A model generated the notes under the pieces. It was not told the DNA's origin. It saw only the letters and a list, made by a program, of their open reading frames with translations, and ran no database searches. This document shows positions 2,625 through 64,000 of a stretch of DNA of 64,000 nucleotides, in pieces. The DNA comes from Mytilus californianus. Its lineage: Eukaryota. Within the stretch, counting starts at the first letter, position 1, and each line of letters begins with the position of its first letter. The stretch is taken from positions 54,002,001-54,066,000 of the forward strand of contig NW_026262593.1 in the NCBI RefSeq assembly GCF_021869535.1, read 5' to 3'. Both the position numbers and the translations under genes were made by a program.

Positions 2625-2722
2625 CATAGTTATATAAGCGGAAGATTTGGCTAGCCATAAAACCAGGTTCAACCGACCTATTTTTTCTCAAAATGTTCTG
2701 TACCAAGTCAGGAATATGACAG
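2625..2722 (+). ncRNA. Degenerate type-P5 twister ribozyme (subfamily A2), predicted inactive
   Basis: Same layout as 63869-63962, but the catalytic G is replaced by A (2642) and the T1 strand is GAT instead of GGT. Confidence 0.55.
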
Positions 2723-5700
2723 TAGTTATCAAATAGTTCGGGCTTTTTTTTTATGATGGCGTTTGTTTTTGTTGCACTTCATACAAATACAATGAAACAG
2801 TGATATCAAAATTTGAAAAGTTTATATTTTTTGCAAGGCTGCATGAATTTCTAACGAACATTCTTGAATCAAAAGTAAGTTAATGAATTTAACTTTATGA
2901 CTACTCCATACGCTATTAAGGGATGCCAAAAATCAGTTTGCATTTAGTTGAAGACAAATTATGAAACGAAATGGCCAATTTGCCAAAAAAAAGCTAAATC
3001 CAATCAATGTGTCGCAGTATTTAAAACACGACTAAGCAACCCTATATTTGTTCGCATTAATTACACATTTACTTTGAGAATCATTTGTAACCAATAGCAC
3101 GTTGCAAAAGGTCATTCGACTGGAAATTGTTATATTTAAAGATCTTTATACATTGTTATAAGGATAGCGAAATTACGAATAGTAGTTTTATCAAAATGAA
3201 AAATAGATACTATTATTAAGATAAATATATATGGAAATTGAATAAATATTTGTCTAAATGAGTATATATGGGAAGATGCGTAGATATAAATACTATTTGT
3301 AATTATTAATAATAGGAATTTACTCATTCTCAAATGCAATTGCGTGATCCATGTTTTGCTTTTCTTGTCAATTTAGAGTTTTATATAAAAGATGTTAGCT
3401 AATCAAGTTTGTTTAAATGGATGACAATAAATTGAAAAAAATAAAGTGTTAGCATGAAAATAAGCTTTGATAAGCATATTAAATGTTAAAACACAATATT
3501 CGTAAGATATAAACATACAAAAACTACTTGTGTGACACATATTGTATATCTGCGTCACAGAAATTGCAGGAAGTTTCCACTTGTCTTTAACCATATCTCT
3601 TAGTCTTTTGCTTGAATGTGAGATTTATGAATACAACTTATCCCTTTATTCTAATTGCATGTGCAGGAGCTGGTTACTGTTCGGAAACTTCTCGGTTCAA
3701 CCTGTACTGTTGACTTGGGTCGTGTCGCTTTAAAGCACGCCAACATGTGACAGTGAACACATGCTGATATCGTGGACAAACCTTTAATTTGTCTTCTCCT
3801 GCAATCCTTTTATTCCATTTGTTAGATTTTAAATACTAGTACGAGAAAACATCTTTTGCTCACAGTTAACTTTCAACACAAATACTGAACAGTTCTGTTT
3901 ATTGATTGCTACAATATAGGGACATTTGGTGTAACAAAAATAATAATACAAAACTTTTCGTAACATAAAATTTATAGCATTTGCATGTAGGATAATTGAA
4001 AAAAAAATTGTTTTTATTCACACTAATAAAAATAGTACACTGACGTATGGATGTCCATTTATTTCGTAATACATGTATATAGCGAACCGATTGGTTTAGG
4101 GCGCTTAATTCAGGAAAGACGGTGTTGTCTCAACGTCACAAAAGCAGGTGTTCTAATCTCGCTGAAAAAAGTACAATATTTTTTAGGTCTCACATTTTTT
4201 GTTTTACTTTCATTTTTGATCATAACTGTATTTTGTACTGTAGCATCATTGTTCCGGGTTAACTCAGCAATTGTTGACGTCATCGTCGCTGCAGTAGTTA
4301 CCGGAAAAGCAATCCGTTTGTCTCACAGGCTAAACTAAAATTTCAAGTTTTGCTGCCGCGGTCGATCATAAACCTTATTCGGCCTCCCAGAATAAAAACA
4401 AAATAGCCGTGAAGAATAGCAATGTGTGCTAAGTATAACGTTAAAGAACAATTAAAATAACCAATCAATCAATCATTTGATCGATCAAGGTATCTAACTT
4501 GTGCCTCAATGCTCCTGAAGAGCATGATATTGTACTAACCATGGAAGGAACATTGACGTCCTAACCTTAATCAACCAAATATGACCAGTTTACTTACTCT
4601 TATAATTGAAAGACTCAAAACAAGATGCCACGGTGTTAACAGATGTAAAAAAAAATCATTCTTTTCGGTAAGGTATTACAAAACGAACTGTAGATACCAT
4701 GCACCCTTTACACTCTGGAAGGGACATGCTATGTTCTCTTGTCTGCTTATTTAACAATGACAGTGTGATTTGCAATGTTAAAGACGACAAGATCAAGGTC
4801 CGACTTGTTAATCTGAGAATATGAAAAATGCATCATCTGCAATGTGAACTAAATGCAAAAAAACTTTATATCCATTAAGTGAAGAAAGATCCAGTTCTAA
4901 TATTTGGTTGAACTTATAACAAATCAGAAAAGATGTGCATTACTACAATACGCATGATAGGCTAACACTCTTTTATAAAATAAAATGTATGTATATATAT
5001 ATATATTAATAAACTCAATATTCTTATACAATAAACCATAAAAAAATAACTGTGTCTCAAGTTAATACTATATTTATTGTCTAAATTTTCATTATCACCG
5101 ACTTCAATTTTGTCTTGTCGATTATGTCAATGCCTTTTAATTGAGAACACATTTTAGATTATGTTTCCAGATATTATAAATATCTTGAGGAGCTTTAAGC
5201 GTTTTGTTATATTTTATTGAAATCCCAATTTTCCAAAGAGTCCATTTAGAATTTATGCTAATTGTGTTTAGAAAATTATCACATTTGAGTATTTCTGTGT
5301 TCTTACCTAACAGCATGTCCTTTTCAACAAAAATATTATCTATGTTTCATTTGAAAAGTGTTTCTGGGAGCTTGTTTAAAATTAACTGTGATATAGTACA
5401 ACTGAAAAATAAGTGTTGCAGGGTTTCTATGTTGTTGAAAATCTATTTTGTCACTTACATGCAAAACGTTCTCTTAGTAGACAGCCAATAATGACTCAAC
5501 AAATCATAACCCTGTTTAAACAACTTTCAACTGATAATCTCATGAAGGAAATCGAGTGTGCCTCTAATCGTTTTATTTGTATTTATAATGACAGTAATTA
5601 TTAAAAATGTTCAAACAATCATTAATACATATGATATCAAAACAGCTGGTACATACAACTTCAAAATACAAAATAACAATTTAATTGAAGACCAATTCAT

Positions 5701-6019: not shown

Positions 6020-6690
6020 TAAAATTGAGAATGGAAATGGGGAATGGGTCAAAGAGACAACAACCCGAACATAGAGCAGACAACAGCCAAAGTCCACTAA
6101 TGGGACTTCAATGCATCGAGAAACTCCCGCACCCGGAGGAGTCCTTCAGCTGGTCCCTGAACAAATATGTATACTAGTTTAGTGATAACAAACGTCATTC
6201 TACACAAGAAACTCGAATTAAAAATCATACAAGACTAACAAAGGCCAGAGGCTTCTGACTTGGGACAGGCGCAAAAATGCGGCGGGGTTAAACATGTTTT
6301 TGAGATCTCAACCCTCCCCCTATACCTCTAGCCAATGTAGAAAAAACAAACACACAACAATACGCACAGTAAAACTCAGTTTAAGAGAAGTCCAAGTCCG
6401 ATGTTAGAATAGGTAACAAAAGAAACTAAACAAAATGACAATAGTACATAATTTAACAAAGGACTACTAGCAGTAACTGACATGCCAGCTCCAGACTTCA
6501 ATTAAACTGATTGAAAGATTATGTCTTCATCATATGAATATCAAGCACAATCCCTCCCGTAAGGGGTTTAGTATTATGCAATCATAAAATATATGAGCAG
6601 AACATAACCCGTGTCATGCCAACAACTAGTTTTAGAATAAATGTGTTTAATTCCGATGCAAAGACCCTATAAGCTAATCAATATGAATGG
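6020..6690 (-). mobile_element. Dispersed repeat family C (twister-bearing)
   Basis: Homologous to 51420-51775 (opposite orientation) and to partial copies at ~38930-39160 and ~54315-54520. Confidence 0.8.
6243..6333 (-). ncRNA. Type-P5 twister ribozyme, family C
   Basis: Minus strand: P5 GGCTAGAGG/CCTCTGGCC; P2 CCC/GGG; catalytic G6316-A6315; T1 CCC/GGG; T2 GC/GT; P3 CGCA/TGCG; P4 CCTG/CAGA (one terminal mismatch); L4 T-CCC-AA-GT. Predicted cleavage T6290/A6289. Confidence 0.72.
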
Positions 6691-8058: not shown

Positions 8059-8945
8059 TCACTCTTCAATAAATGGTTTGGAATGTTCACGCATCAAAGA
8101 AACGATACCATTGTATCCTAGTTTTCTGGTAATTTATTTTGGTGGTAAAAGAGATTCACCAACACTGGCACGTATATAGTAATCTGCTCCTTCCGACAGT
8201 AACATTATGACTGTATCTATATTATCTTAAAAACAATCTATAAAAAAAACTCCAGAATTTCCTCTCTTATTAATGTATGCCTTATTGTCTAGATTCAGCT
8301 TTACTATATCTACATGATTCTTCTCACTAGCAATAAACAGGGGAGACGTTTCCTTATCTGTACACTGGTTAACGTCTGCCTTGTTGTCAAGCAACAATTT
8401 TTCTACACCTGCATGATTCTCCAGACGAGCAATAAAGGGTAGATTTTCCAGTATCTATACACTTGTTTATGTCTACATTGTTATCAAGTAACAGCTTTGC
8501 TATATCTACACAATTCTCCTGAAAAGCCATGAACAGAAGTAATATTTTACTATTTCCACACTTACTAATGGCTGCCGTGTTTGCAAGTAATATCTGTACT
8601 ATAACTTTTTGATTCTCCTTACAAGCATTAAACAAGGAAGATATTCCATCATTGTTACACTTAATACTTTCAGTCTGATTGTAAAGTCACAACCCTACAA
8701 GATACACATAATTCATATCACAAGCCGTGAAAAAGGGAGACGTTTTTTAGTCTGTACATTAATCAATGTCTACCGTCTACCTTATGGTCAAGTAACAGTT
8801 TTACCACATCGACATGATTCTGCTGACGAGCAACACACAGGGGAAATTCTCAAACATCTGTACAGTGGTTAACGTCTGCCTTGTTGTAAAGCAACAGTTT
8901 TACTACATCTGCATGATTCTGCAGACAAGCAATAAACAGTAGTAT
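8059..8945 (-). pseudogene. Exon 4, part d: decayed ankyrin tail (~8 units) and probable ancestral C-terminus
   Basis: Repeat-like peptides switch frames with several stops; the terminal segment reads ...DNIDTVIMLLSEGADYYIRASVGESLLPPK*ITRKLGYNGIVSLMREHSKPFIEE* (TGA 8059-8061). Confidence 0.65.
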
Positions 8946-10524
8946 CTGTACACTTATCAATGTCTACATTGTTATCTAGTAACAGCTTTACTATATCTAT
9001 ATAATTCTCTTGACAAGCAATAAACAGGGGAGATGTTCCTTCATCGTTACACTTGTTAACGTCTGCCTTGTTGTCAAGTAACAGTTTTACTATATCTAAA
9101 TTATCCTGTTGACAAGCAATAAACAGGGGAGATAATCCGTCATCTGTACACTTATCAATGTCTACATTGTTATCTAGTAACAGCCTTACTATATCTACAT
9201 AGTTCTCTTGACAAGCCATAAACAGGGGAGATGTTCCTTCATCGTTACACTTGTTAATGTCTGCTTTGTTGTCAAGTAACAACTTTACTTTATCTACATA
9301 ATCATGTTGACATGCAATATACAGGGGAGATGATCCAGTATATCTACACTTATTAATGTCTGCTTTGTTGTCAAGTAACAGCTTTACTGTATTTACATGA
9401 TTCTCCAGACAAGCGATAAACATGGGAGATTCTCCATCCTCTCTGCACACATTAATGTCTGCTTTATTGGTAAGTAACAACTTTACTATATCAACATCAC
9501 CCTTCTGACAAGCAATATACAGGGGAGATGTTCCATTATTTTTACACGTATTAATGTCTGCTTTCTTGTCGAGCAACAGTTTTATGACATCTGCATGATT
9601 CTGTTGACAAGCAATAAACAGGGGAGATACTCCGTCATCTGTACACTTATCAATGTCTACATTGTTATCTAGTAACATCCTTACTATATCTACATAATTC
9701 TCCTGACAAGCAATACACAGGGGAGATGTTCCTTCATTGTTACACTTGTTAATGTCTGCTTTGTTGTCAAGTAACAACTTTACTATGTCTACATCACCCT
9801 TCAAACAAGCAATATACAGGAGAGATGTTCCATTATTTTTAAACGTATTAATGTCTGCCTTCTTGTCAAGTAACAGCTTTACTATATCAAAATGTTCCAT
9901 CTGACAAGCAACATACAGGAGAGATGTGCCATCAATCCTACACTTATTTATATCTGCTTTGTTGTCAAGTAACAACTTTACTATATTTATATCACCCTTC
10001 TGACAAGCGATATACAGTGGAGATGTTCCATTAATTTTACACGTATTAATTTCTACACTGTTGTCCAGTAACATCTTCACTACATTAAGATGTTCCATCT
10101 GACAGGCTATTAACAGGGGAGATGTTCCATCGATCATACTCTTATTAGTGTCTGCCTTGTAATCAAGTAGCAGCTTTACTATACCTATATGATTATTCTG
10201 ACAAGCAACATACAAGGGAAACATTGCATAACCATTATAATTATTAATGTCTGCCTTATTTTCAAGTAACAGCTGGACTATAGCTTCATGATTCTCTTGA
10301 CAAGCAATATCTAGAGGAAGGCTGTTCCATTTTGTACACTTGTTAGTGTCTGCATTGTTTATAAGTAACAGTTTTACAATATCTACATGTTTGTTCTTAC
10401 AAGCAATATATAGGGAAGATATACCCATGTTTATGTCTGCCTTGTTTTTAAGTAACAGTTTTACTATATCTATATGATTCTTCTGACAAGCAATAAACAG
10501 AGGAGAAATGCCCATCTTGTACAC
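8869..10524 (-). CDS. Exon 4, part c: ankyrin repeat array (~16 units) after a 1-nt frameshift
   Basis: ACA-AGATGGGC-ATT has 8 nt where the repeat consensus has 9; the repeats continue in the new frame until a further deletion frameshift at ~8940. Confidence 0.9.
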   Translation of the reverse strand: MYKMGISPLFIACQKNHIDIVKLLLKNKADINMGISSLYIACKNKHVDIVKLLLINNADTNKCTKWNSLPLDIACQENHEAIVQLLLENKADINNYNGYAMFPLYVACQNNHIGIVKLLLDYKADTNKSMIDGTSPLLIACQMEHLNVVKMLLDNSVEINTCKINGTSPLYIACQKGDINIVKLLLDNKADINKCRIDGTSLLYVACQMEHFDIVKLLLDKKADINTFKNNGTSLLYIACLKGDVDIVKLLLDNKADINKCNNEGTSPLCIACQENYVDIVRMLLDNNVDIDKCTDDGVSPLFIACQQNHADVIKLLLDKKADINTCKNNGTSPLYIACQKGDVDIVKLLLTNKADINVCREDGESPMFIACLENHVNTVKLLLDNKADINKCRYTGSSPLYIACQHDYVDKVKLLLDNKADINKCNDEGTSPLFMACQENYVDIVRLLLDNNVDIDKCTDDGLSPLFIACQQDNLDIVKLLLDNKADVNKCNDEGTSPLFIACQENYIDIVKLLLDNNVDIDKCTDTTVYCLSAESCRCSKTVALQQGRR

Positions 10525-13500
10525 TTATCAATGTCTGCTTTGTTTTCAAGTAACAGTTTCACTATATACACATGGTTATTCTGACAAGCAGTTAACAAGG
10601 GAGAGTTTTCAAAATAATTACTATTATTAATGTCTGCCTTGTAGTCAAGTAACAGTTTTACTATATCTACATGATTCTTCTGACAAGCAATGAATAATGG
10701 AGATATACCATTATATATACACTTATCAATGTCTACCATATTGTCAAGTAAAATCTGTACAATAGCTTTATGATTCTCCTGAGAGGCAATATAAAGGGGA
10801 GATTTTCCATCATATGTCAAGTTATTAATGTCTGCCGTGTTGTTCAGTAACATTTTAACAATCGCTCCATGATTTTTCTTACACGCAATAAACAGGGCAG
10901 ATTTGCCACCAAAATGACGAATATTAATGTTTGCCTTATTGTTTAGTAACAGTTGTACTACCTCTACATGATTCATCTGACAAGCAATAAATAAAGGAGA
11001 TATTCTATAATATTTACACTTATTAATGTCTGCATTGTTGTGAAGTAACAGCTGTACAATAGCTTCATGATTATTTTCACACGCAATAAACAGGGGAGAT
11101 ACTCCATCATATTTACACTTATTAATGTCTGCTTTGTTATCAAGTAAAAGTTTAACTATATTTACATGATTCTCCTTGCAAGCAATAAATAATGGAGATA
11201 TTCCATTATATTTACACTTATTAATGTCTGCATTGTTATCCAGTAACAGTTTTACTATATCTAAAAGATTTTTCTTACAAGCCATTAACAGGGGAGATAT
11301 TCCATCATATTTACACTGATCAATGTCTGCCTTGTTGTCAAGTAATAACTGTACCATTGTTCTATGATTCTCTTGACAAGCAACATATAGGGGAGATATT
11401 CCATCATATTTACACTTATTTATGTCTTCCTTGTTGTCCAGTAACAGCTTTACTTTATCGATTTGATTCTCCCGACAAGCACCAAACAATGGATATGGTT
11501 CATCGTCTGTCCTCTTATCGATTTTTGCCTTGTGGTCGAGTAACAATTTCACTATAGGTACATGATTATTCTTACTAGCAATACACATGGGAGATGTGCC
11601 ATCATCTGTACATTTATTAATGTCTGCCTCATTGTCTAATAACAGCTTTACTATATCTACATGATTCGTCTGACAAGCAATAAACAAGGGAGATTTTCCA
11701 TCATCTAAACACTTATTCATATCTGCCTTGTTGTCAAGTAACAACTTTACTACATGTTCCCAATTTTCAAGACATGCAATAAATAGGGGAGATATTTCAT
11801 CATATTTACACTTATTAATGTTCGCCTTGTTGTCAAGTAATAGCGTTAATATATTTATATGATTATTCTGACAGACGATAAACAGGGGTGATGTTCCATC
11901 ATCTGTACATTTATTAACGTCGGCCTTGTTGTCAAGTAACATCTTCACTATATCTATATTGTTCATCAGACAAGCAATATACAGAGGAGATATTCCGTCT
12001 GCATTACACTGATTGATGACTGCACTGTTGTGAAGTAACAGCCTAACTATATCTACATAATTATTCTGACAAGCAATATATAGGGGAGAGCTGCAGTCAT
12101 ATCTACACTTTTTAATGTCTACTTTGTTGTCAAGTAACAGCTTTACTATATCTACATGATTATACTGACAAGCAACATATAGGGGAGAGCTGTAGTCATA
12201 TCTACACTTGTTAATGTCTACTTTGTTGTCAAGTAACAGCTTCACTATATCTACATGATTATTCTGACAAGCAACATACAAGGGAGAGGTGTTATCAAGT
12301 GAACACTGATTTACGTCTGCCTTGTTATCAAGTAACAGCTGTACTATATCTGAAAGATTATTCTGACAAGCAATAAACAGGGCAAATTTTTTATCATCTG
12401 TGCACTGATTAACGCATGCCTTGCTGTCAAGTAACATATTTACTACGATTACATGATTATTCTGACAAGCAGTATATAGGGGATATGTGCAGTCATATCT
12501 ACACTTGTTAATGTCTACTTTGTTGTCAAGTAACAGCTTTACTATATCTACATGATTATTCTGACAAGCAACATACAGGGGAGAGGTGTTATCAAGTGTA
12601 CACCGGTTTACGTCTGCCTTGTGGTCAAGTAACATTTTTACTATTCCTATATGATCCTTCTGACAAGCTACATACAGAGGAGATGCGCCTCTATCTGTAC
12701 ACTTATTAATGTCTGCCTTGCTGTTTAGTAACAACATTATTATATCTTGATACCCTTCCTCACAAGCAATAAACAGAGGAGAGGTGCCGTCATATCTACA
12801 CTTGTTAATATCTACATTGTTGTCAAGTAACAGCTTAACTATATCTAAGTGATTTTTCTGACAAGCAAAAAACAGAGGAGATGTTTTATCATTTGTACAC
12901 TTATTAATGTCTGCATTTTTATCAAGCAAAACATTTATTATATCTTGATACCCTTCCTGACAAGCAATAAACAGAGGAGATGTGCCATCATATCGACACT
13001 TGTTAATGTCTGCATTGTTATCAAGTAACAGCTTTACCATATCTACATGATTATACTGACAACTATTAAAAAGGGGGGATGTACCATCGATTGTACTTTT
13101 ATTAATGGCTGCCTTTTTGTTAAGCAACAGCTTTACTATATCTACATGATTCCTGTGACAAGCAATAAAGAGGGGAAATATTCCATTATATTTACACCTA
13201 TTAATGGCTGCCTTTTTTTCAAGCAACATCTTTACTATATCTACATGATTCCTGTCACACGCAATAAATAGAGGAGATATCCCATCATAATTACACATAT
13301 TAATGTCTGCCTTTTTGTCTAGTAACAGCTTTACTATTTCTACATGATTCCTCTGACAAGAAATAAGCATGGGAGATATTCCGTCATCTTTACACTTATT
13401 GATGTCTGCCTTATTGTCAAGTAACAGCTTCACTATATCTACATGATTCTCCTGACAAGCAATGAACAAGGACGATGTTCCATCGTTCGCACACTTATTA

Positions 13501-24974: not shown

Positions 24975-25200
24975 AGGGCGACTGGCACACAAGTGAGAAA
25001 TTTAGCTATCTATAAAATCAGGTTTAATTCGCCATTTCGTCATAAGAAAATGTCTGTACCAATTCAGGAAAGAACAGTTGTTTTTCATTCGTTTGGTGTG
25101 TTTGAGTTGTTGATTTTACCATTTTATAACGGCCATTCCGTTTTGGATTTCCCTTGCAATTCGGTATTTTTGTTATGCTACTTTTGTTCTACTGTAGGTT
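24975..25200 (+). repeat. Family A repeat with degenerate twister
   Basis: Homologous to 41151-41350; T1 strand is AAT and T2 is GC/TT, so both pseudoknots are broken. Confidence 0.65.
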
Positions 25201-36589: not shown

Positions 36590-37270
36590 TAAAACGTAAA
36601 GTAATAAAAATACCGAACTCGAAAGGAAATTTCAAACGAAAAGTTCCTTATCAAATGACAACCTCCAAAGCTTAAACACACCAAACGAATGGAAAACAAC
36701 TGCCATATTCCTTACTTTGTACAGGCATTTCCTATAGAAAATGGTTGATTAAGCCTGGTTTTATAGCTAGCTAAACCTGTCACTTGTATGACAGTGATAA
36801 TTCCTTTATATTGACAACAATGTATGAGCAAAAAATCAAAGACATAATAAGTAATAATTTGTCTCATTTGTGTGACATCGTAACAATTGTAAAAAAAAAA
36901 AAACAGTGGTTGGTAAATTCTGTAAATGTTTTGTACATATCCCGGAGTTTTGCAACGCAAACAATACATTATGCGTTTTCTCGTTGTTGAAGGGAGTAAC
37001 TTTTTCAAGAAAAAAAGTAAAATCGCAAAAATACTGAACTCCGAGGACAATTCAAAAAGGAAAGTATCTAATCAAATGGCAAAATCAAAAGCTCAAACAC
37101 ATCAAATGTATGGATAACAACTGTCATATTCCTGACTTGGTACAGGCATTTTCTTATGTAGAAAATGGTGGTTTGAACCTGGTTTTATAGCTAGCTAAAT
37201 CTCTCAGGTGTATGACAGTCGCATCAAATTCCATTATATTGACAACGATGAGTGAACAAAACAAACAGAC
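36590..37270 (-). repeat. Two tandem family A copies, each with a degenerate twister
   Basis: Copy at ~36698-36795 has catalytic G>C (36779) plus L4/P4 changes; copy at 37117-37222 has T1 GAT and a P2 mismatch. Equivalent sites are 424 nt apart. Confidence 0.75.
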
Positions 37271-40200
37271 TGTGCCACTGTATCAAAGCATTTAATGATA
37301 TTTCTGGCTTTGTTAAGATTAATTTTTTTCATTAAAATGTCAAACGTATTTAAAAGAATTTTCTCTTCCTTCATCCCTGTGTGATTTATAAGTATAGGCC
37401 AGATTTTGATCTTCTAAAAATAACAACTGTTTTTGCGAATTGAAAACTGTTGTATTCTCTTGATAGAATAATGACGGTTGAATATCATATTCACTCTGTT
37501 ATTTAATCGTGATCTCCGTTGGAAATTTTATGTAGTAGTTTGTAGTCCTATTTGTAGCATGTATTAAACAAAACCAGTAAGAATTAACTTTTTGGAATAT
37601 GTTAATTAATTTCAATCAACAACAAGGTTATAAAACCAAGGTTCCCTCTCTCCCGTAAAGGGTCTTTTGGTATATTTGAAATAACAACCTGGCATTTACA
37701 TGTTTGTGTTTATTTCAATATCACCAAGAGTCTTTATAATATAGTGACGATATCTTTTCACTTCCGTCTATTTCTATAACCATGTTTTGTTTGTTGGGCT
37801 ACAGCTTTGTAACCGGAGATTATAAACTTCTATCCTTAATGAATTACTTTACCAACCTGAGTTCGATCCCGACACCCCTGGAACAGTAAGCAACCACTAT
37901 AACAACTGATTTAAAGAAGTTACTTACTAACGCATCTTAGTGAGGCCGGTTGTATATCTATTACGTAAGGAGAAGCATCGCTACACGTAAGTTGTTACAA
38001 TGAAATCTAGTTAAACGTGCTCGTTCTTGCCTTCAATAGTTAAATACTTTCACATGTTGAAAAAGTGTCTGTATTTTCATATACTTCTAATATGATCATT
38101 TAATGAAAGATTTTATTTTATTTAATTTCCTTTATTAAGTTTGATCAACTTTAAAGAGTAAAACGAGACTATACCATAATCTGTAGAAATCACACAAGAT
38201 AACGTGCAAAGCTTTTTTTCTATATGTATTTGTCTTGAAAATGTTTAATATTTGAAGTCAATTAATTCTCATTTTTTAATAATGTTAACTACGAACATTC
38301 GAATATCCAGCCACTAGAAAATCTTATAAAGAATAAGCACACTTCATTGAAAGCCGAAATCTATGCCAAGCACACAACAAATCTAACAGTTGAAAATGAA
38401 GGCAATTTAATGATAATTTTAAAGAATAATTGACTGTACTTAAAAACATAGCAAACAAAAATTATTACACTGCTAAACCAGTTTTATCTGAAACAGTTAT
38501 TTTGATTTGAACAGCTCTTAATAGACTGAACAATAAAGTGTTCAGTTGTGTTCCGTCTTTCAGTTAAATTTCCGATTTATTCACTGAGGTATCGTCAGTA
38601 CTATTCAAACATATTTTGCTTGCAGATATTATAATATTTGTGATTTTTTTTTAAATCACAATTTCTAAAAAGGCAGGAGAATTATGAAAATGCTTTTGCT
38701 AATGTAGGAGGAAATTAAATAGGCTTAACACTGGCGTATTGAAAAATAAAATGAAATAATTTATTAATGAGACAAACAGACAAATACTGATTATATTCTT
38801 AAGAAAGAATACTTAATTATTGACATTGACCCTCATCTTGCTGTCAAAGAGATTACCATAATTATAGTTTGTTTTTCTTTTTTTTTATTTACCAAGACAC
38901 AGTAACTTGACCGTTACAGCATAAACATTTGAATAGAAATGGGTAATCTGTCAAAGAGACAACAACCCGACCAAAGAGCAGAAAACATCCCAAGGCCACC
39001 AATGGATCTCCAACACAGGGAAAAAAATCCACACCCAGAGGCGGGCTTCACCGGACACCTAAGCAAAAATGTGCACTAGTTCACTGAAAATGGACGTCGC
39101 ACTAAACTCCGAAACATATAAATGAACTACAATTTTTAAAAAAAAAACATACAAGATTAACACTATTCAATATACATGTATTTACATGTGACAAAAATAG
39201 TGAAAACGACAGTGACAACAACAACATATAACAAATTAAGAAAATAAATAAATAACCAGAAAAGCAAAAAAAAATCTGCTAGCCGAACATGATTTACCAG
39301 CCTTTTTACATATCTTTTTTTTTCTTTTAGAAAATATCCTCAATTCCGTACCAATTAGTTCTGCTTGTGGTGTTGTTTGGTTCTATTTGCTTCATTATGG
39401 ATTATAAAGTAGACATTATACATCTGATATATATTTTCTCGTGATATTTGAAAATTTGCTTTAGAATCACGTTTTCTGAAAAGAAATGAAAAGACCATTC
39501 TTTTGATAATGTAGGAGGAAATTGAATAGGCTTAACACTGGTGTACTGAAAACTAAAAAGAAATAATTCATTAATGAAATCCAAGGAGACAAAGACTGAT
39601 AAAAATCTAAAGAAAATAAATTCGATTATTGACATTGACCCTCATCTTGCTCTCAACGAGATTACCATTATAAAAGTGTTTTGTTATCTAACCTAGACAC
39701 AGTATACTGACAGCTACAACATGTAAACATTCAACATACATGTATTTACATGTGACAAAAATAGCGACAAATACAGTGACAACAACAGAAAAACAAATTA
39801 AGAAAATGAATAAATAAACAGAAAAGCTAAAAAGTACCCCTATTAGCCGAACATCTTATACCAGCCTTATTGTTTTACATGTCTTTTTTAACATTTAATT
39901 CCCTACCATTTAGTTTTGTTTGTGGTGTATGGTTCTAATCATTCCACTAAGGATTATATAGTAGTCATCATAAATTAGAAATTTATTGTAATGAAAAATT
40001 TGTAAAAAAAATATCATGTGCATTTTCTATAAAGAAATAAGAAGAATATTTTTTAATTAATAACGGACGCAATTGAAAAGGCTTAACACTGGTATACTGA
40101 AACATCATAGAAAATGATTTTTTAATGAGATTTAAACAAAGACTGATTAAATTCTAAAGAAAAAAGAACTCGATTAATGACTCGTATCGTTCTCTCAAAG

Positions 40201-40533
40201 AGATTAGCATAATGATTGTATTATCTTAATTTACCACGACACAGTATCTTGGTAGATATAAATTCCATAACAAAAATAACGACAACTACATTTGCAGCAA
40301 CAGAAAAACAAATTACGAAAATAAATAAACAAATAAACAGAAAAACAAAAAGTTCCCCTGCTAGCGGAACAAGTTTTATCAGCCTCTGTCCTTTTACGTG
40401 TCTTTTTGTCAAAAGGAAAAACCTTAAATTCCCTACTAATTTGTTTTATTTGTGATTTCATTTGATCCTATTTGTCACATTATAGATAAGAAAGTAGACA
40501 TTATAAATCTGAATTATATTATCATGTGATATT

Positions 40534-41360
40534 GTTCATCTCAGTACCAGAATCTATGACAAACGAGACGATTTTAGTTTTGAAAGTATCAATTTCCCCC
40601 ACCTCAGTAGCAATATACCAACTTCACCTGTATATACATTTCCCAACTTATTCGGTATTCAAGCGCTAACAGCTGCTACTCACACTTTGTTAAACGTCAA
40701 CAGTGTCTTAGCAGAAAATTGATGAACCAATGATATGTCAAGGAACATCTCGTCTTTTTTCTAAAAAATGTTCAATAGTGTTCTTTTATTTGTCTTTGTA
40801 AATTATTACTTTTACTGTTAAGTCTATTTTTGGTAATATTGATTTGACGTGGCTTGGTACTTATACATTCCGTCATTGTGTTATTGTGCTATTGTAAATT
40901 CTTGTATTCTTGTCTTTCGTTTTTGCTTGTGTGCTTTGTTTAAATGCCTTTTTATTTTTCTTTGGCGCATTTGTTTGTTTTATAGTGATTAACACAATTT
41001 TGAATGCTGTACCTTTATTTTTTACATTTTTACCTGTTATGGCTGTTTGTTTTATTCAATGTTGAATGCTGTACCTTTATTTTTGACATTTTTACCTATT
41101 ATGGCTGTTTGTTTTATTTACACATCGTTGTCAATATAATGGAATTTTATGCGACTGTCATACAAGTGAGAGGTTTAGCTAGCTATAAAACCAGGTTTAA
41201 TCCACCATTTTCTACATAAGAAAATGTCTGTACCAAGTCAGGAATACGACAGTTGTCATCCATTCGTTTGATGTGTTTGAGCTTTTGATTTTGCCATTTG
41301 ATCAGGGACTCTCCGTTTTGCATTTTCCTTGGAGTTCAGTATTTTTTTTTATTTAACTTT
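40534..41360 (+). mobile_element. 5'-truncated PLE-type retroelement (family A): RT C-terminus plus 3' region with twister
   Basis: VHLSTRIYDKRDDFSFESINFPHLSSNIPTSP...KRQQCLSRKLMNQ followed by the same 3' sequence as 17430-17990 (minus); the array unit is continuous across the insertion. Confidence 0.85.
41151..41256 (+). ncRNA. Type-P5 twister ribozyme, family A
   Basis: P5 GCGACTGTCATA/TACGACAGTTGT (1 mismatch); P2 TC/GA; G41170-A41171; T1 ACC/GGT; T2 AC/GT; P3 CATTTTCT/AGAAAATG; P4 TCTG/CAGG. Predicted cleavage T41198/A41199. Confidence 0.72.
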
Positions 41361-42148
41361 TTGTAAATTTTTCTTTGAAATCACGTTTTCTAAAAAGAAA
41401 TAAGAAGAAAATTCTTTTGATACTACAGGAGGAAATTAAATAGGCTTTAATCTGGGGCGTTGAAAAATAAAAGGAAATCAGATCAAAAAAGACAAAGACT
41501 GATTAAATTCTAAACATTTTAAACTCGATTATTGACATTGACCCTCATCTTGCTCTCAAAGAGATTACCATGATTGTTACTTTTAGTTCCCTACCAATTA
41601 GTTTTGTTTGTGGTGTTGTTTGGTTCTATTCGTTCCATTTAGGATTATTAAGTAGTCAATATAAATTGGAAATATATTGTAATGTGAAATTTGTAAAACA
41701 AAAGTTGAATTACATTTTCTGTAAAGAAATAAGAAGAAAATGCTTTAGCTAATGCCAGGGGGAAATTGAAAAGGCTCAACACTATCGTACTGAAAACTAA
41801 AATGAAATAATTCATTAATGAGATCAAAACAGACAAAGACTGACAAAATTCTAAAGAAAAAAACCTCGATAATTGACATTGACCCTAATCTTGCTCTCAA
41901 AGAGATTACCATAATAATAGTGTTATCTCAATTTACCTCGACACAGTATATTGGCAGCTTTAAATTTAATATACATGTATTTACTCATGACAAAATAACG
42001 ACAAAGACAGTAACAACAACAACAGAAAAACAAATTAAGAAAATAAACAAATAAACAGAAAAGCAAAAAAGGACCCCTGCTAGCGGAACAAGTTTTATCG
42101 ACCGGATTGTTTTACATGTCTTTTTTTTACTTAGAAATAACCTTCAAT

Positions 42149-42276
42149 TAAGAATTGAATGCTTCTTTTTGTAAATTCATTGGGGTGTAAAAGCGTTGAC
42201 CGAAGTACAAAAAATGTACGCACGATCAACGCTTTTACAACGCTATGAAATTACTAAAAGAAGCATTCAATACTTA
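42149..42276. repeat. 128-nt imperfect palindrome at the end of an inserted element
   Basis: ATTGAATGCTTCTTTT/AAAAGAAGCATTCAAT, TGTAAAAGCGTTGA/TCAACGCTTTTACA and GTAC/GTAC around a 7-nt loop. Confidence 0.85.
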
Positions 42277-43348
42277 TAATTACATTTTTTCGTTATGATC
42301 ATGAAAACACGATTACTACCAAGGTTTTCTTTTATTTACCTGTGCACTTTATTGTGGAAACGTGTGTCATCATGTATGATTCAATTCATGCAATTCATTT
42401 TGAAATGAAGAATGACGCGAGATAGCTGTTAGCCAATCAAAATAATGTATAATAATGAAACATACATCTAATGTAACTATAAACCTACCAGCTAGTTTTG
42501 TTTGTGGTGTTGTTTGGTTCTATTCGTTCCATTTAGGATTATAAAGTAGTCATGATAAATTGGAAATAAATTGTAATGTGAAATTTGTAATTTTTTCTTT
42601 CGAATCACGTTATTTGAGAAATAAGTAGACAATGCTTTAGCTAATGCAGTAGGAAATTGAAAAGACTTATCACTGCCATACTGAAACAACAAAGAAAATG
42701 TTTCATTAATGAGATTCAAACAGACCAAGACTGATTAAATTCTAAAGAAAGGAGAAACTCATTTATTGACATTGCCCTTTTTCCTGCTCTCAAAGAAAAT
42801 AGCATAATAATAGTGTTTTGTTAATCTAACTCGATTAAATCATCTTGGCAGCTTTAAATTTAATATACATGTATTAGGAATAAAGTTTACTTGAGTGATT
42901 ACCTTTCGAAAGTATTTCATTTTCATGTTAATAAGCATTATAAGCGTTGATGAAAAACTATGTCTATAAAAAATGAAGAATTGAAATATGTTTATAAATT
43001 TTTATAAAAACCTGGCTAGAGTGCGTTTTGTTGTATTAGTTTTAAATCGGGTTTTTTGTTGTGTTATTGTAGGATTTCCGTTATAAGAAGTCTAAGAAAT
43101 CTAAGAAAAGCACACACAATAAATATCAAACCCCAAACGGTATGAAAGAATTCAGTCATATAAAATGACAAAACCTAAATTCCAAATGAAGACAAATTCA
43201 TAACGAAAATCACATTCCCGCTTTTAAGAGTATACCTCTTGTTGACAAATGTACCAATGAACCAATTTAAACATTCAGATTTTAATTGTTCCATCCAACA
43301 GGCTTTTGATTTAGATACGTTGTTTCCTTTCCATCCTCTATTCATTTT

Positions 43349-50619: not shown

Positions 50620-50975
50620 AGACACTGACACGTACGTACTGGTGACCATTAAACTTATTTAGGGTAGATTTCAATTTTTCTTCCACATAACTCTGTTGCT
50701 GTAGTTTAATGTAAGAAGCACTTCTCCGTTAACGAAGTTCGTATAGTGTAAACATGCACGCGCGTAACGTATTAACTGAGATTGTATGTAAATGCCATAA
50801 GACTGATCATAGTGTATGTAACTCCCGCGTAATGTGAAGTTGACAATGGTAAAGTAGAGATCATTACGTTTGTCATAGATTCTAGTTTGCAGACGTCCAT
50901 TTGTGTCAATATCGAGAAAATGATCAAGATATGAAGCAGGCATACTACTTTCGGTAGTATCCTGATCTTAACAGT
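50620..50975 (-). mobile_element. PLE-type RT C-terminal fragment
   Basis: DTTESSMPASYLDHFLDIDTNGRLQTRIYDKRNDLYFTIVNF...YGIYIQSQLIRYARAC. Confidence 0.75.
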
Positions 50976-51434: not shown

Positions 51435-51526
51435 GGCTAGAGGTATAGGGGAAGGGTTGAGATCTCACAAAACATGTTTAACCCCGCCGAATTTTTGCGC
51501 CTGTCCCAAGTCAGGAGCCTCTGGCC
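51435..51526 (+). ncRNA. Type-P5 twister ribozyme, family C, catalytic G apparently mutated
   Basis: All helices match 6243-6333 with a perfect P4 (CCTG/CAGG), but GGGGGAGGG reads GGGGAAGGG (A51452). Confidence 0.62.
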
Positions 51527-52537
51527 TTTGTAAGTCTTGTATGTTTTTTTAAATTTTAGTTCCTTTATATGTTTTGGAGTTTAGTGTGACGTCCATTTTC
51601 ACTGAACTAGTACACAATTTTATTTAGGGGCCAGCTGAGAACCACCTCCGGGTGCGGGATTTTCTCGCTGCGTTGAAGACCCATTGGTGGCCTTCCGCTA
51701 TTATCTGCTATTTGGTCGGGTTGTTATCTCTTTGACATATTTCCCATTTCCATTCTCAATTTTATATATGAAATAATGTGACAAAATCAATAAAATGTTC
51801 CCTCTAGTTAATGCCAAATAACTTGATTGCTTTTTCAAATAAATGAACGATTGGAAAATCAATAGTTAACGAGAAACGTCATGGTTTGTATCTCTGATGT
51901 GTTTTGTCATCTTTTATTTTGACTTAATCCGATCTTGACAGTTTACTTCCACTGTCTTTAATTAAATAAATCTACCAAAGAATATTGATGAATCCATAAT
52001 ATTTGACCGAATTTTTCTGTCGTTATATAGCATATATTTCCTTATCTTCAATTTTTTGCTTCTTTTTTTATGCTTTTTTCTATTTTATTTGTTTCTTTGC
52101 CCAGGATGATAAACTTATTAAGAAATTTCAGGTAATTGTTGGAAAGGTACCCTGTCCGTCATAGAGAGTCTTATATATTCTTTATCGTTACAACATCATA
52201 TCCTTGATAAAATGAGTGGAGTATAAATTTTCTTCCTATATTCACCAAATTTGAATGATGCTGAATTTCTGAATCTCCAGCATATGGATAATATATCTCT
52301 CAGTTGATACAACATTCCAGAGCTTGCGTTTCCTATCATGATTTCTTTGCTAGAGGGGTGCTGCTTACAAGGAAGATATTGGACCAGGGTTTCAAATGCT
52401 GACGTTAAAGTGATTCTGTCATATTTAGCAGGAAAAAGTAAAATCACAAAGATACTATCTCCGAGGAAAATTCAATCGGAAAGTCACTAATCACATGGCA
52501 AAATCAAAAGTCAAAACACATCAAACGAATGGACAAC

Positions 52538-52637
52538 AACTGTCATATTCCTGACTTGGTACAGGCATTTTCAAATGTAGAAAATGGTTGATTGAACCTG
52601 GTTTTATAGCGCTAAACCTCTCACTTGTACGACAGTC
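52538..52637 (-). ncRNA. Type-P5 twister ribozyme, family A, intact
   Basis: Same as 53509-53608 except at the unpaired nucleotide between P2 and T2 and in the P3 loop. Predicted cleavage C52594/A52593. Confidence 0.75.
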
Positions 52638-53508
52638 TCATCAAATTCCGTTATATTTACAACGATGCGTGAACAAAACAGACATAATAAATAAAATAGT
52701 CAAAATATGGGTACAGCAGTCAGCAGTCATGATAAACTTGAAACTTAGTCAAAATATTTAAAGAAAAATTGTTTTGTCATATTCATATAAACGTAGGCCG
52801 AATTTTTTTTTTATTGTCAAGAAGCAATATAAATTTTTTATGATATTTTATATAATGACAAGAAATTATCTTTATATTAATTATCAGTTAACCGATTCAC
52901 AATACTTTTATAAATTGATAGTAAAATTTTGTTTCGAATAGTTTTTTCATCATTGCTTATGCCAATTTTGATCAATTTTTTTAAAGGTTTAATATCACAA
53001 TATTATAACCTTTGAAATTAACTTCTATTGTTCCATAAAAGCTATAAAAACGTACGTCTGTTTTCGTTTCATTAGGGAACAATAAAAAAAACTGCAAATA
53101 GATACTTCTACTTTTGATCGACTTGTCCTTACAGATTGTCGAAAAATCTATTAAATATCGCTTCGAATTTCCAAACTTATCATTGTTTCACTTTGATATA
53201 CTGATACTGGTTGATTATTCCATGTACCTGTTTCTAGTAAGGAGCCTCGACAGTTGTTGTATCTACTAACATTGAAAACTTTTAGGGAGTTAAAGGCAGC
53301 TCTTTGATTTTTGCTGTTGAATGTATAGTGATTTAGGATGACTTGGTGCTTTGTTTTTAATTTGATAGATGCTTTTGTGCTTTTTTGTAAATGATTGTTT
53401 GTTTTAAGATTGTAACACAGTGAAGACTGCTGTACCCATATTTTGACTATTTTATTTATTATGCCTGTTTTGTTCACGCATCGTTGTAAACATAACGGAA
53501 TTTGATGA

Positions 53509-53608
53509 GACTGTCGTACAAGTGAGAGGTTTAGCGCTATAAAACCAGGTTCAATCCACCATTTTCTATATTTGAAAATGCCTGTACCAAGTCAGGAATA
53601 TGACAGTT
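53509..53608 (+). ncRNA. Type-P5 twister ribozyme, family A, intact (best copy)
   Basis: P5 GACTGTCGTA/TATGACAGTT; P2 TC/GA; G53526-A53527; T1 ACC/GGT; T2 AC/GT; P3 CATTTTC/GAAAATG; P4 CCTG/CAGG; L4 T-ACC-AA-GT. Predicted cleavage C53552/A53553. Confidence 0.78.
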
Positions 53609-55725
53609 GTCCATTCGATTGATGTGTTTTGTCATTTGATTTTGCCATGTGATTAGGGACTTTTCGATTGAATTTTCCTCGGATTTTACTTTTTAAAAGA
53701 TTTTTTTTTATTGAAAACCATTAAACTACCTCTTTGTGTCGTTTGGTGACTTCGTGTTGTTGGGAGGTGTATTAGCTTCTTTTATTTAGATATTAAGGTC
53801 AACAATGACTTTTTGGAAAGGTAAATTTGTTTGACACGTTCGTTGTAGAAATTATCTTCTTCAGGCTTGCATTTTCCGAAATACTGTCATGAACAAGATT
53901 TATCTGTTTTTAATTAAAATTTCAATATATATTTGAGATCCAAATGCAATGGTCTATCTCCCAATCCAACTATAACACGAGATTTCTATCAAACAAAATT
54001 TTTTACTTAACCTTTCAAAGTTAAATTTCTTCGTTATCTGGCTGAACATAAATTACCATCAAGACGTTGACAATCAGCCGCAGGTGATAAAGCGCAAAAA
54101 CGTTTTGAAAAATACTACCAGATAGAGAGTAAAATAGATGTCATTTTGCAAATACCCCGCAAGTGGTTAATAAAAATCAACCAACATCGGAAAAATACAT
54201 CAAACATATATTAGTTGTTAACTAATCAAACTTCATCAAACGTATAAGATGTACTTAAATATTATATACCATATGCCAAACTCTTAATCGGTCAAGTTTA
54301 TACCTATTTTAAATAATAGAATAGGAAGTGGAAACGGGGAATGTGTGAAAGAGACAATAACCAAACCAAAGAACATAAAACGAGATGAACGCCAGACTAA
54401 ACTCCGAAACATAAACATGAACCCAAATTAAAAGAAAAAAACACATAAGACTTACGAAGTCTAGATGTTCATGGCTTGAGACAGGTACAAAAATGCGGCG
54501 GGGTTTAACTAGAGATTACCAAAGATCTGCCGTGAGGAAACATTCTTCAACTTACACAAAGGATGTTCGCTCTTCTTGTTTTTGAATTTTTTGCCAGATA
54601 TTCGGAATCCTCTGGTTTTATCCATGTAATGCCATTAAAAATTATTTGCCCACAAACCCCTACTTTTCTCTCCATAATATGATTACATATAGTTTAAAAT
54701 GTCATCTTTGAAAATCTTATGAAATCCTTGTTATTTTTTATTGTTTTTGAAAAAAACTGGTTCTAATGTTAAATTATTGAAAAATCTAGAGAGAATTATT
54801 TCCCGGCAAATTTTCAATGACTTATATCTATGAGGAACTTTTTTATTCCTTATGCCTCCATTTTTTATCTATTATGTTTTCCCTTTTGAGATGTTTATTC
54901 AACATTTGATACGATATTCATAAATGTATCATTCAATTTACTAGGATACGGGATAATGTAAAGATATACCCATGAAACTTTTATCGTCTTCCATTGATTT
55001 CTGGTTTATTCATAGTCTTTACAGTCTTGCATACTTGATCAAATTAGTTGTTTGATTATCTCTTTTTTGTATTTAGTGTCATGGCAGTTGGTATAGGAAT
55101 GCTTGATTAAACGTTTAGTCCATTACATTAATGAACCTCCTTGATAAAAGATGTTATGTCGTTTGATGTTTTATTCTCCGTTGTTAGTTGAAACGTTGAA
55201 ATGTTTTGTAATACAATACGATCTTGTGATTTTTTGCGTAACAAAAAGTTCAAAGGACATTATGATCAATCATTAGATCTGGTAATGACTTTTACTCAAG
55301 CGATGTAATTTCAACTATTACAAAAAAATCTTTGATTAATACAAGTGATGTTTTATGGTTATTAATCGTTGCGTATGAGAATTAAAAAAAAATATAAACA
55401 CTTACATGTATGACATGTATGACAAAGGAAAATAAAAGATAATTTAAATCAATACTTGTTAAGTAAGATGATCTTTTCTCAAACTTGCATGTGTTGACAT
55501 GAATTATCATAGATTTGGCCATAATTATAAATCGACTGTTTACAAAACTTTGAAGTTTTCGAAATACTAACGATTCCCCCCCCCTCCCCCTCCCCCCCCC
55601 CCCCCCTTTGCAATATACATGAAATATAACCTTAGATGTATTTGACAAAATCTGTCGGGATTTTGGTTCATCACTGATCTTTTACCTCGTACTTTATTTG
55701 GCGTTTAAAACTTTTGTTTATTCCA

Positions 55726-56165: not shown

Positions 56166-56999
56166 GAATGACTTAAAGGAGATGCCAAAGATACGAAAGT
56201 CGAAAACGAACTGACAATGCCAAGGCATAAAACGCAAAACGATCATAAACCAAACAACTGTATACAAAATACAACATGTTTTGATTTAAATTTCTTCACG
56301 GTAAGCAAAAAAGCTTAAGAGGAAGTTCAATCCAATGATTATTGTGTCAACTTGGATATTATATACTTCAAATGCAGGCACATAAAACGTTGCTAGACAG
56401 AAATGGGTTACACACAAATAAAATCATCTATTGCCATAAAAAGTAGTTATCAAATACCCTTCTTGTTTAATTCCAAATTAACAAGCATCTGTAATATCTT
56501 TTATTCCAAGATTTATGAAATAGAACTGATAAATGTAGTCAAAATACTTTGAATTATACTGTTAAAGGACATCATCCTCTAGTATATAGCGAACAGTGAT
56601 GTCAAGGGATAATGCTAGTTTTTTGTTCTATTTTCTTCTTTTTGAGAAGCTCCTGTATGATGTCTGCTAAAACTGAAAAGTCAAATCGGTGAGTAGAGGA
56701 ACACAGTGTGATTCTATTTGAATGCTAACTGCCCGTTGTAAAACACATTCAATGATGCAAACTTAAAATTTTTTTATTGAAAATGGACATAGGTATATGA
56801 TTAATTACTACAGCTCTAGTCTCTCAAAATGGCCAGGGAATTTGTCACAATATCCGCAGAGGGTTAAGAGAGTAGGAAAAGTCAGGAAAAAACATCATGC
56901 ACATAAAATAGAAAATCGACATAAATCCATTGTTTGCTTTGATAAAATACAAAACCATAGAGACCCTGACAATAAGAACGATAGATTGTGTTTTAGATA

Positions 57000-63352: not shown

Positions 63353-63868
63353 GTAAGTACTTGGTTTTGTTTTTGTCTATTTCTATGATAATTTAATTTC
63401 AGCTAGTTCATATATATGATTTGAAGTTTAAAGCAACTATATGCACAGGATTTATTTGTTTTTACACATTTTTGATTTAGAAGAAAAACCGACATGGTTA
63501 CAAAATACAAATAATTACACCATTACTAATACAATTCTATATTAATATTCTTGTAATGGTTAGAAAATACATAAACTAACACCATTACAAACTTAATCCC
63601 AATTTTATATTCTATTTTTAGAATTTATCTGTGACGTACTTTTTGTGGCGTTGATACATTTGTGTGACGCACAGTTCATTATTTAATTGTGGTGTACTGG
63701 TGTACTGTCGTAAATTAATGGGAGGTGTACGTTGTTATTCTGTGGTTAACATGTTGTAATGTTCTATTATATTATTTATTTATGTATTTCACTGTCTTGA
63801 GTGTTTTTGTGTTTATTTGTATTGTATTCCTGTCACATAATGTTGCCATTTAAGTGGTATTGTTAACA

Positions 63869-63962
63869 TTGCTAGATAAGCGGGAGGTTTGGCTAGCCAT
63901 AAAACCAGGTTCAACCCACTATTTTTTCTTAAAATGTCCTGTACCAAGTCAGGAATATGGCA
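63869..63962 (+). ncRNA. Type-P5 twister ribozyme, subfamily A2
   Basis: P2 CC/GG; G63884-A63885; T1 ACC/GGT; T2 AC/GT; P4 TCCTG/CAGGA; palindrome TGGCTAGCCA; P5 weakened. Predicted cleavage C63912/A63913. Confidence 0.65.
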
Positions 63963-64000
63963 GTTGTTATCAAATAGTCCGTTTCTATGTATGCTGGCGT

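Follow-up and report, generated by a model that had tools for sequence, protein, structure and literature searches.

A probable type-P5 twister ribozyme module in the 3' tail of Naiad-type Penelope-like elements of Mytilus californianus

What is the module of about 100 nucleotides (nt) that recurs in the dispersed repeats of a 64,000-nt stretch of the Mytilus californianus genome (assembly GCF_021869535.1, contig NW_026262593.1, positions 54,002,001 to 54,066,000; called the window below and numbered from its first nucleotide)? A sequence-only reading of the window had proposed a circularly permuted twister ribozyme at 53509-53608. From the comparisons and folding calculations described here we conclude that the module is probably a type-P5 twister-class self-cleaving ribozyme, carried in the 3' tail of Naiad-type Penelope-like elements and of their 5'-truncated copies; a twister-class fold in the P5 permutation is supported, being favoured by every computational test that we ran. 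The twister class and its permutations were described by Roth et al. (2014, as cited in PMC10085705 and PMC6765202), and type-P3 and type-P5 forms have been known since that description (PMC10085705; PMC6765202).

The elements of the module follow one another in the order P5-P2'-GA-T1'-(P1 region)-N^AA-P2-T2-P3-P4(U-NCC-AA-GU)-P5, exactly as the sequence-only reading had them (Table 1). This is the type-P5 permutation, in which the chain ends lie in P5, with P2'-GA-T1' before a closed P1 region and AA-P2-T2-(P3)-P4 after it. All of the core letters are present, namely GA at 53526-53527, AA at 53553-53554 and the loop U-NCC-AA-GY at 53585-53592, and they are kept in the intact modules of every lineage, the GA being nearly invariant among these and the AA at the predicted cut conserved. 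P4 and its loop at 53581-53596 agree with the Rfam consensus cCGG-UCCCAAGC-CCGg. Going by established twister chemistry, G53526 would be the counterpart of the catalytic guanine and A53553 the catalytic adenine, and scission would fall between C53552 and A53553, leaving a 2',3'-cyclic phosphate and a 5'-OH.

Copies were located with R1, a covariance model of our own built from 17 modules, together with blastn and a motif scan. With R1 the window yields 11 strong copies, scoring 59-90 bits: nine of families A and A2 that blastn also gives and two of family C from the motif scan (the earlier estimate was about ten). The subfamily pairings quoted at that time are likewise present: P2 as TC/GA, CC/GG and CCC(C)/(G)GGG, T1 as ACC/GGT and CCC/GGG, and T2 as AC/GT and GC/GT. 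Four of the 11 are fully intact (the nucleotide 3' of the cut being 41199(+), 53553(+), 63913(+) and 52593(-)) and each of the other seven has at least one decay mutation, so that the majority of the window copies are decayed. A further, weak R1 match to a decayed copy at 54459-54546(-) (22.7 bits) lies within a stretch resembling family C at 51476-51596.

Metagenome contigs scanned with an 18-mer from the P4 loop yielded more than 120 loci, many of which resemble classic type-P1 twisters, and approximately 30 of which share the permuted architecture of the window while differing from it in the sequences of P5, P3 and the P1 region. R1 finds further modules in these loci, and some of those modules lack the search 18-mer. 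In a second genome (assembly GCA_033119305.1, loci L126 and L127), fetched after R1 had been built, the model finds four modules with P4 GCCG/CGGC, T1 CCU/GGG, P2 CCAU/GUGG and changes in both of the palindromes that are described below. Among the loci of the scan there is, in addition, a large family of type-P1-looking twisters (L015, L016, L019, L022, L030 and about 40 others, on contigs Ga0056108, Ga0056133 and Ga0126xxx) with the same P4-loop 18-mer (...AAGCCAGC...GCCTGTCCCAAGTCAGGA TAAATTGGGAGGGTTG...); its three members in the Rfam control described below, L016, L019 and L030, score under the twister-P1 gathering cut-off of 67.2 bits.

The modules were aligned by fitting them to R1, and P5, the P2 register and palindrome 2, which shift columns between families, were scored by our own scripts. 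Over the full structure, including both pseudoknots, standard pairs fill 89.2% of cells (41 sequences) or 90.7% (30 sequences), as compared with 81-82% in shuffled controls, none of 500 of which reach the observed value, a comparison in which the kinship of sequences from one family makes independence look greater than it is; with a shift of the partners by 1-3 columns the figure is 26-40%. Substitutions on both sides of a pair are seen in P2, T1, P3 and palindrome 1, and in P4 as well once the second genome is added. The P2 pair adjoining the core covaries (GC 20 / AU 11 in one alignment, GC 17 / AU 9 in the other) and the helix ranges from 2 base pairs (bp) in family A to 4 bp in family C. 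The pair between T1' position 3 and T1 position 1 is found as UA 19 / GC 8 / GU 3, with T1 variants ACC/GGT, CCC/GGG, UCC/GGG and CCU/GGG, and P3 pairs covary also, for example UA 13 / CG 10. The 4-bp P4 is paired in 97.5% of cells. T2 is AC/GU or GC/GU with 89-90% of cells paired, its changes being one-sided only (A or G opposite U at position 1, AU 17 / GU 18; C-G at position 2). The earlier remark that unrelated P5 sequences still pair holds in the related modules, where our scripts find at least seven such sequences, each pairing over 7-12 bp directly outside the core. P5, P3 and P4 all appear in the minimum-free-energy folds computed for five lineages (z-scores -1.4 to -3.7). Because the search used a fixed 18-mer, variation in P4, in T2' and in most of T1 is excluded in most of the fetched modules; the bias is absent only from the copies of the window itself and from the second genome.

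How often would such an arrangement arise by chance? A loose descriptor that allows any loop letters and a P2 of at least 2 bp expects 0.36 matches per window, so that the bare arrangement is not rare, and it also picks an evidently spurious site at 31880(-). When the published loop U-NCC-AA-GY is required, no match turns up in 1500 random windows that share the dinucleotide composition of the real one, which has four. The match to the twister consensus that had been proposed is borne out in the core letters, in both pseudoknots and in P2, P3, P4 and P5, all kept through compensatory changes, and in the end-to-end alignment of the Rfam Twister-P5 model that is taken up below.

The module has no P1 stem, the strand after T1' showing no complementarity to the strand before the cut. 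Instead, two self-complementary segments stand there in every lineage, constant in location but not in letters, the first beginning one base after T1' and a U, and the second ending at the cut or one base before it. Palindrome 1 occurs as TAGC(TA)GCTA, TGGCTAGCCA, TGGCGCGCCG, TGAGATCTCA, TGGGATCCCA and TGTGCACA, and palindrome 2 as AACC-A-GGTT, AATC-T-GATT, AAACATGTTT, AACTAGTT and ATCC-A-GGAT. Two variants are self-complementary only by way of G-U pairs, which points to the RNA of the module strand as the relevant molecule. Alone, the P1 region has a folding energy of 0 to -1.7 kcal/mol, that is to say no fold, and as a homodimer -9 to -20 kcal/mol. The hammerheads of canonical Penelope-like elements, which have a palindromic loop instead of stem III, cleave as dimers (PMC6765202); by analogy the palindromes would let two modules pair, and cleavage may depend on dimers.

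We turn now to the element that carries the module. Family-A copies have a common 3' end (~41362 in the plus-strand copy) and varying 5' ends, and the repeat is identified from its sequence as the 3' tail of a 5'-truncating Naiad-type Penelope-like retroelement. At 40534-41362 a copy splits a host repeat that is seen unbroken at 39448 (a filled/empty pair). This copy starts in frame with ...YDKRDDF...; its P5 3' strand ends ~110 nt, and its predicted cut lies ~160 nt, before the element 3' end. Decayed open reading frame (ORF) pieces of the longer copy at 17434-19531(-) read VPVDKASNN, GIRMGTNCA and RYIDDV, the first of them (19189-19341(-)) having the DKA variant of DKG that is seen also in locus L070 as VPADKAANN. 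Pfam gives no match on the short ORF pieces of this decayed copy and the identity of the reverse transcriptase (RT) is for this reason taken from phmmer, from weak RVT_1 matches and from tblastn: a 50-residue piece matched 2297 proteins in the representative library, with weak RVT_1 matches in the longer ones, and tblastn shows an RT ORF that ends upstream of the module, on its strand, at two places in the window as well as in L031, L050 and L070. The distance from the RT stop codon to the module, which is thus in sense orientation, is 85-600 nt. The window copies retain only parts of the RT, in keeping with their 5' truncation; in L050 a GIY-YIG domain (PF01541, 27.3 bits, cut-off 22.6) is found upstream of RVT_1-like RT pieces and the module lies 85 nt past the ORF end. 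L070 and L050 both have the module although the identity between their RTs is only 46%, so that the association spans diverged lineages.

It is at this point that a tRNA-derived short interspersed element (SINE) has to be considered, in which the conserved block GGTTCAATCC would be the B box of polymerase III. Family A does hold this block and it resembles the B-box consensus. The block is not retained in family C or in other lineages, no A box is seen at the right spacing, ARAGORN reports no tRNA-like gene in the whole window, Rfam gives no tRNA match at E<=10 in 53300-53800, and the repeat is continuous with an RT ORF; we regard this origin as exceedingly improbable. A hammerhead was considered also, since TGATGAG stands at 53503-53509, just upstream of the module, and was rejected, there being no Rfam hammerhead at E<=10 in 53300-53800 and no GAAA after the would-be helix II.

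Naiads are characterised by an N-terminal GIY-YIG domain with an RT and by the DKA variant of DKG (Craig et al. 2021, PMC8557442). The elements studied here resemble them in the N-terminal GIY-YIG and C-terminal RT, in DKA, in 5'-truncated and inverted copies and in very high copy number in bivalves (PMC8557442). Naiads are reported to be without canonical hammerhead motifs, and the word 'twister' occurs 0 times in that paper (PMC8557442). On the short contigs available, no tail copy of the kind that would make up a pseudo-long terminal repeat was seen upstream of a full ORF on its strand. Further fragments of the same RT family are found by tblastn at 22346-22580(+), 50701-50964(-), 52265-52396(+) and 56337-56747(-), the third of these just left of the inverted tail copy and on the same strand as the copy at 53381-53735. 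The 827-nt family-A element is inserted within a region (38600-42900) of direct-order repeats of several hundred bp, 70-82% identical to one another. A further repetitive region, at 8350-14000, is an array of at least 55 copies of a 99-bp (33-codon) tandem repeat (60-87% identical) that lies within very long minus-strand ORFs (8869-10524 and 10470-14573) and has several retroelement copies in or near it.

A number of observations weigh against a twister carried by Naiads, the relatedness within families and the 18-mer bias noted above among them. At gathering cut-offs Rfam gives no twister match in the window, nor in 20 related loci. With permissive settings twister-P1 aligns P2-T2-P3-P4 at 53555-53603 with 18.3 bits (cut-off 67.2), and Twister-P5 aligns over its full length (1-58/58) to both family-C copies with scores, 18.4 bits at 51435-51526 and 15.8 bits at 6243-6333, that are far below its cut-off of 37.6. 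By themselves such sub-threshold scores are not significant. The blank at gathering cut-offs carries little weight because the test is insensitive: a gathering search of 14 loci with classic-looking type-P1 twisters returned only a tRNA. The association with the element is, moreover, not universal, since the modules of GCA_033119305.1 form a ~1.8-kb tandem array whose strand is opposite to that of the nearest RT fragments, and a Naiad-derived fragment of that assembly (L001) has no module within 4 kb downstream. The loci fetched through protein matches (L001-L005) are too short or are without a same-strand module, L003 having only a 33-bit match on the opposite strand. The tandem units themselves (L126:9918-13699(-) and L127:10381-10483(-)), which show 95-100% identity, each carry a module that belongs to a distinct subtype (P4 GCCG/CGGC). 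They fall inside annotated genes that end in exons made of Naiad RT fragments, joined to dermatopontin or EGF domains; these are probably chimeric gene models.

The folding calculations raise a further objection. A helix of GGKUU (T1' and UU) with AAMCC (AA and the start of P2), spanning 53528-53557 and available in all lineages, would tie up T1', the AA and a portion of P2. It is preferred by RNAalifold, where one of its pairs seems to covary (UA 8 / GC 7), and by minimum-free-energy folds. One might therefore suppose a simple hairpin domain, in which this helix encloses the palindromes beside the P3 and P4 hairpins and the likeness to a twister is coincidental. The covariation stems, however, from a one-column register shift between families and not from homologous positions, T of GGT facing A of the invariant AA in family A, and G of GGG facing a P2 cytosine in family C. 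Such a domain leaves unexplained the U-NCC-AA-GU loop, the covariation of T1 with that loop, the T2 pairing and the conserved GA, and sits poorly with the absence of chance matches to the full consensus descriptor in the random windows, so that we hold it to be very unlikely. The helix and the active fold exclude one another, and we take the helix for a possible inactive conformer, which could serve as an off-state of the ribozyme.

The absence of a P1 stem and a P2 of just 2 bp in family A complete the list, and they are what one might expect if the module were a descendant or mimic of a twister that no longer cleaves and serves instead as a structured element of the 3' untranslated region (UTR), for example an RT recognition feature for starting target-primed reverse transcription or a stabilising, cap-like fold. 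Many retroelement RTs bind their template close to the 3' end, and the place of the module, in the 3' UTR near that end, would suit such a role, as would the competing helix; and in the genomic copies the sequence is complete to either side of the predicted cut, from which it follows that the RNA that was copied was uncut or rejoined. The letters that only catalysis would call for (GA, and AA at the cut) persist, though, throughout the intact lineages and are missing only from visibly decayed copies. P1 is reported to be dispensable for twister activity (PMC11662667; PMC8501958), large-scale assays find that imperfections in P1, P2 and P4 are tolerated while the pseudoknots are sensitive (PMC11662667), and canonical Penelope-like elements bear an active ribozyme at the same place (PMC6765202). 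A module that has ceased to cleave is, in our view, unlikely, and a type-P5 twister-class ribozyme remains the best explanation.

Comparison with known systems bears on what kind of twister this would be. The type-P5 twisters of Rfam (RF02684, clan CL00120) share with the module the element order opened at P5, the GA, AA and U-NCC-AA-GY letters and the two pseudoknots, and it is their model that aligns end to end to the family-C copies. Unlike them, the module scores well under the gathering cut-off, replaces the P1 hairpin by two palindromes, has a P3 hairpin where the model has a short linker and has GU instead of GC as T2', with T1 ACC/GGU and only 2 bp of P2 in family A. A twister (or T-variant) at the 5' end of Perere-3 long interspersed elements (LINEs; RTE clade) of Schistosoma mansoni has been functionally tested (Liu et al. 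2021, PMC8501958), and twisters have been noted for RTE elements (PMC7761336). As in the module, the ribozyme is there part of a retrotransposon transcript and P1 is weak or absent. The Perere-3 twister is of type P1 and sits at the extreme 5' end, where its cut makes the element RNA start at AA and a target-site duplication gives a P1 strand, whereas the present module is of type P5, follows the RT ORF as part of the 3' UTR with its predicted cut inside the repeated unit, and has a Penelope-like host and not a LINE.

Closer in position are the hammerheads of canonical Penelope-like elements, which have the same kind of host, are located near the 3' end and show a palindrome in place of the closing stem (PMC6765202). 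They are of another ribozyme class, and the dimer dependence of the module is a prediction from folding energies. Animal non-LTR (long terminal repeat) retrozymes (Cervera & de la Pena 2020, PMC7229834; preprint 10.64898/2026.07.22.740005) resemble the repeat in being short, non-autonomous and related to Penelope tails and in having a self-cleaving ribozyme; unlike the window copies, which are dispersed or inverted, they are hammerhead-bearing and tandem. Among the related loci, some have two or three modules on one strand at distances of 240-610 nt. Two to three same-strand modules per locus, ~100-850 nt from start to start, are seen on four loci (L032:251-1173(+), L073:3676-4311(+), L053:3287-3444(+) and L059:365-815(-)), the layout expected of retrozyme-like tandem units bearing a twister in place of the hammerhead. 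A large survey predicts type-P1 twisters in bivalves among many other groups (PMC11662667). In a literature search outside of which most subscription journals fell, we found no paper linking a twister to Naiad or Penelope-like elements.

Table 1. Elements of the module at 53509-53608 and further module or tail copies in the window
Feature	Positions	Strand	Remarks
P5 5' strand, up to 10 bp	53509..53518	+	7-bp core GACTGTC, 53509-53515
P2 3' strand, P2' = GA	53524..53525	+	Preceded by linker; pairs with TC 53555-53556
Conserved GA	53526..53527	+	Family-C copies: aligned with the 'GA' in GAGgG of Rfam Twister-P5
T1' = GGT, pseudoknot strand	53528..53530	+	Pairs with ACC 53586-53588
P1 region, 22 nt	53531..53552	+	No P1 stem
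Palindrome 1 (TAGCGCTA), in place of P1 3' strand	53532..53539	+	Self-complementary at the same position in all lineages
Palindrome 2 (AACC-A-GGTT)	53543..53551	+	Ends one base before predicted cut
N^AA: predicted scissile bond C53552 / A53553, then A53554	53552..53554	+	UAA of the Rfam Twister-P5 consensus
P2 5' strand TC (53555-53556), one unpaired C, T2 = AC (53558-53559)	53555..53559	+	T2 pairs with GT 53591-53592
P3 hairpin, 7 bp, closed by C-G	53560..53580	+	Minimum-free-energy fold; aligned as P3 by Rfam twister-P1
P4, CCTG 53581-53584 / CAGG 53593-53596	53581..53596	+	Loop T-ACC-AA-GT holds T1 and T2'
P5 3' strand	53599..53608	+	GACAGTT 53602-53608 pairs with 53509-53515; minimum-free-energy fold extends P5 to 10 bp
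5'-truncated family-A tail copy holding the 53509-53608 module	53381..53735	+	blastn extent against other copies
Inverted, near-identical tail copy; module 52539-52637(-)	52407..52767	-	98% over 186 nt
827-nt 5'-truncated element: RT ORF end 40534-40719, 3' UTR, predicted twister 41153-41253, tail	40534..41362	+	Filled/empty site, translation, tblastn
Longer decayed copy: RT ORF pieces with DKA and RYIDD; predicted twister 17521-17621(-)	17434..19531	-	blastn, R1, tblastn
Family-A2 module, P2 CC/GG, intact core	63867..63964	+	R1; consensus-loop descriptor
Family-C module, P2 CCCC/GGGG, T1 CCC/GGG; outer P4 pair mismatched	6243..6333	-	Motif scan, Twister-P5, R1
Family-C module, GA -> AA	51435..51526	+	Motif scan, Twister-P5, R1
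Decayed family-A module, T1' GAT, P2 broken	37120..37220	-	R1
Decayed family-A module, GA -> CA, T1 ACA	36699..36796	-	R1
Decayed family-A module	24980..25079	+	R1
Decayed family-A2 module, GA -> AA, T1' GAT	2625..2723	+	R1

What would the ribozyme do for the element? By analogy with the hammerheads found at the same place in canonical Penelope-like elements, it would process read-through or tandem element transcripts. A more far-reaching scheme, which we put forward tentatively and consider rather doubtful as a whole, is that Naiads, thought to be free of ribozymes, have replaced the hammerhead by a permuted twister in which P1 arises only between two modules paired through their palindromes, that cleavage at tandem or inverted tails gives unit-length RNA, and that a ribozyme is a general requirement of retrotransposition by endonuclease-bearing Penelope-like elements and no passenger. 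The ends of such unit-length RNA would carry the ribozyme halves held by P5, P2 and T1, ready for religation to a circle.

Penelope-like elements are a major and poorly understood class of retrotransposons in which the role of the hammerheads is unsettled. The Naiad clade, which dominates bivalve genomes, has been used to argue that these elements can dispense with the ribozyme or that it is no more than their parasite (PMC8557442), an argument that would be weakened if Naiads have a twister at the same position. Were the assignment true, this would be the first twister tied to a Penelope-like element, one of a large natural set of animal type-P5 twisters missed by current Rfam cut-offs, and possibly a twister that depends on dimers. 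A ribozyme of either class kept at the same place would point to a real function, one that could be addressed by mutating a single conserved guanine.

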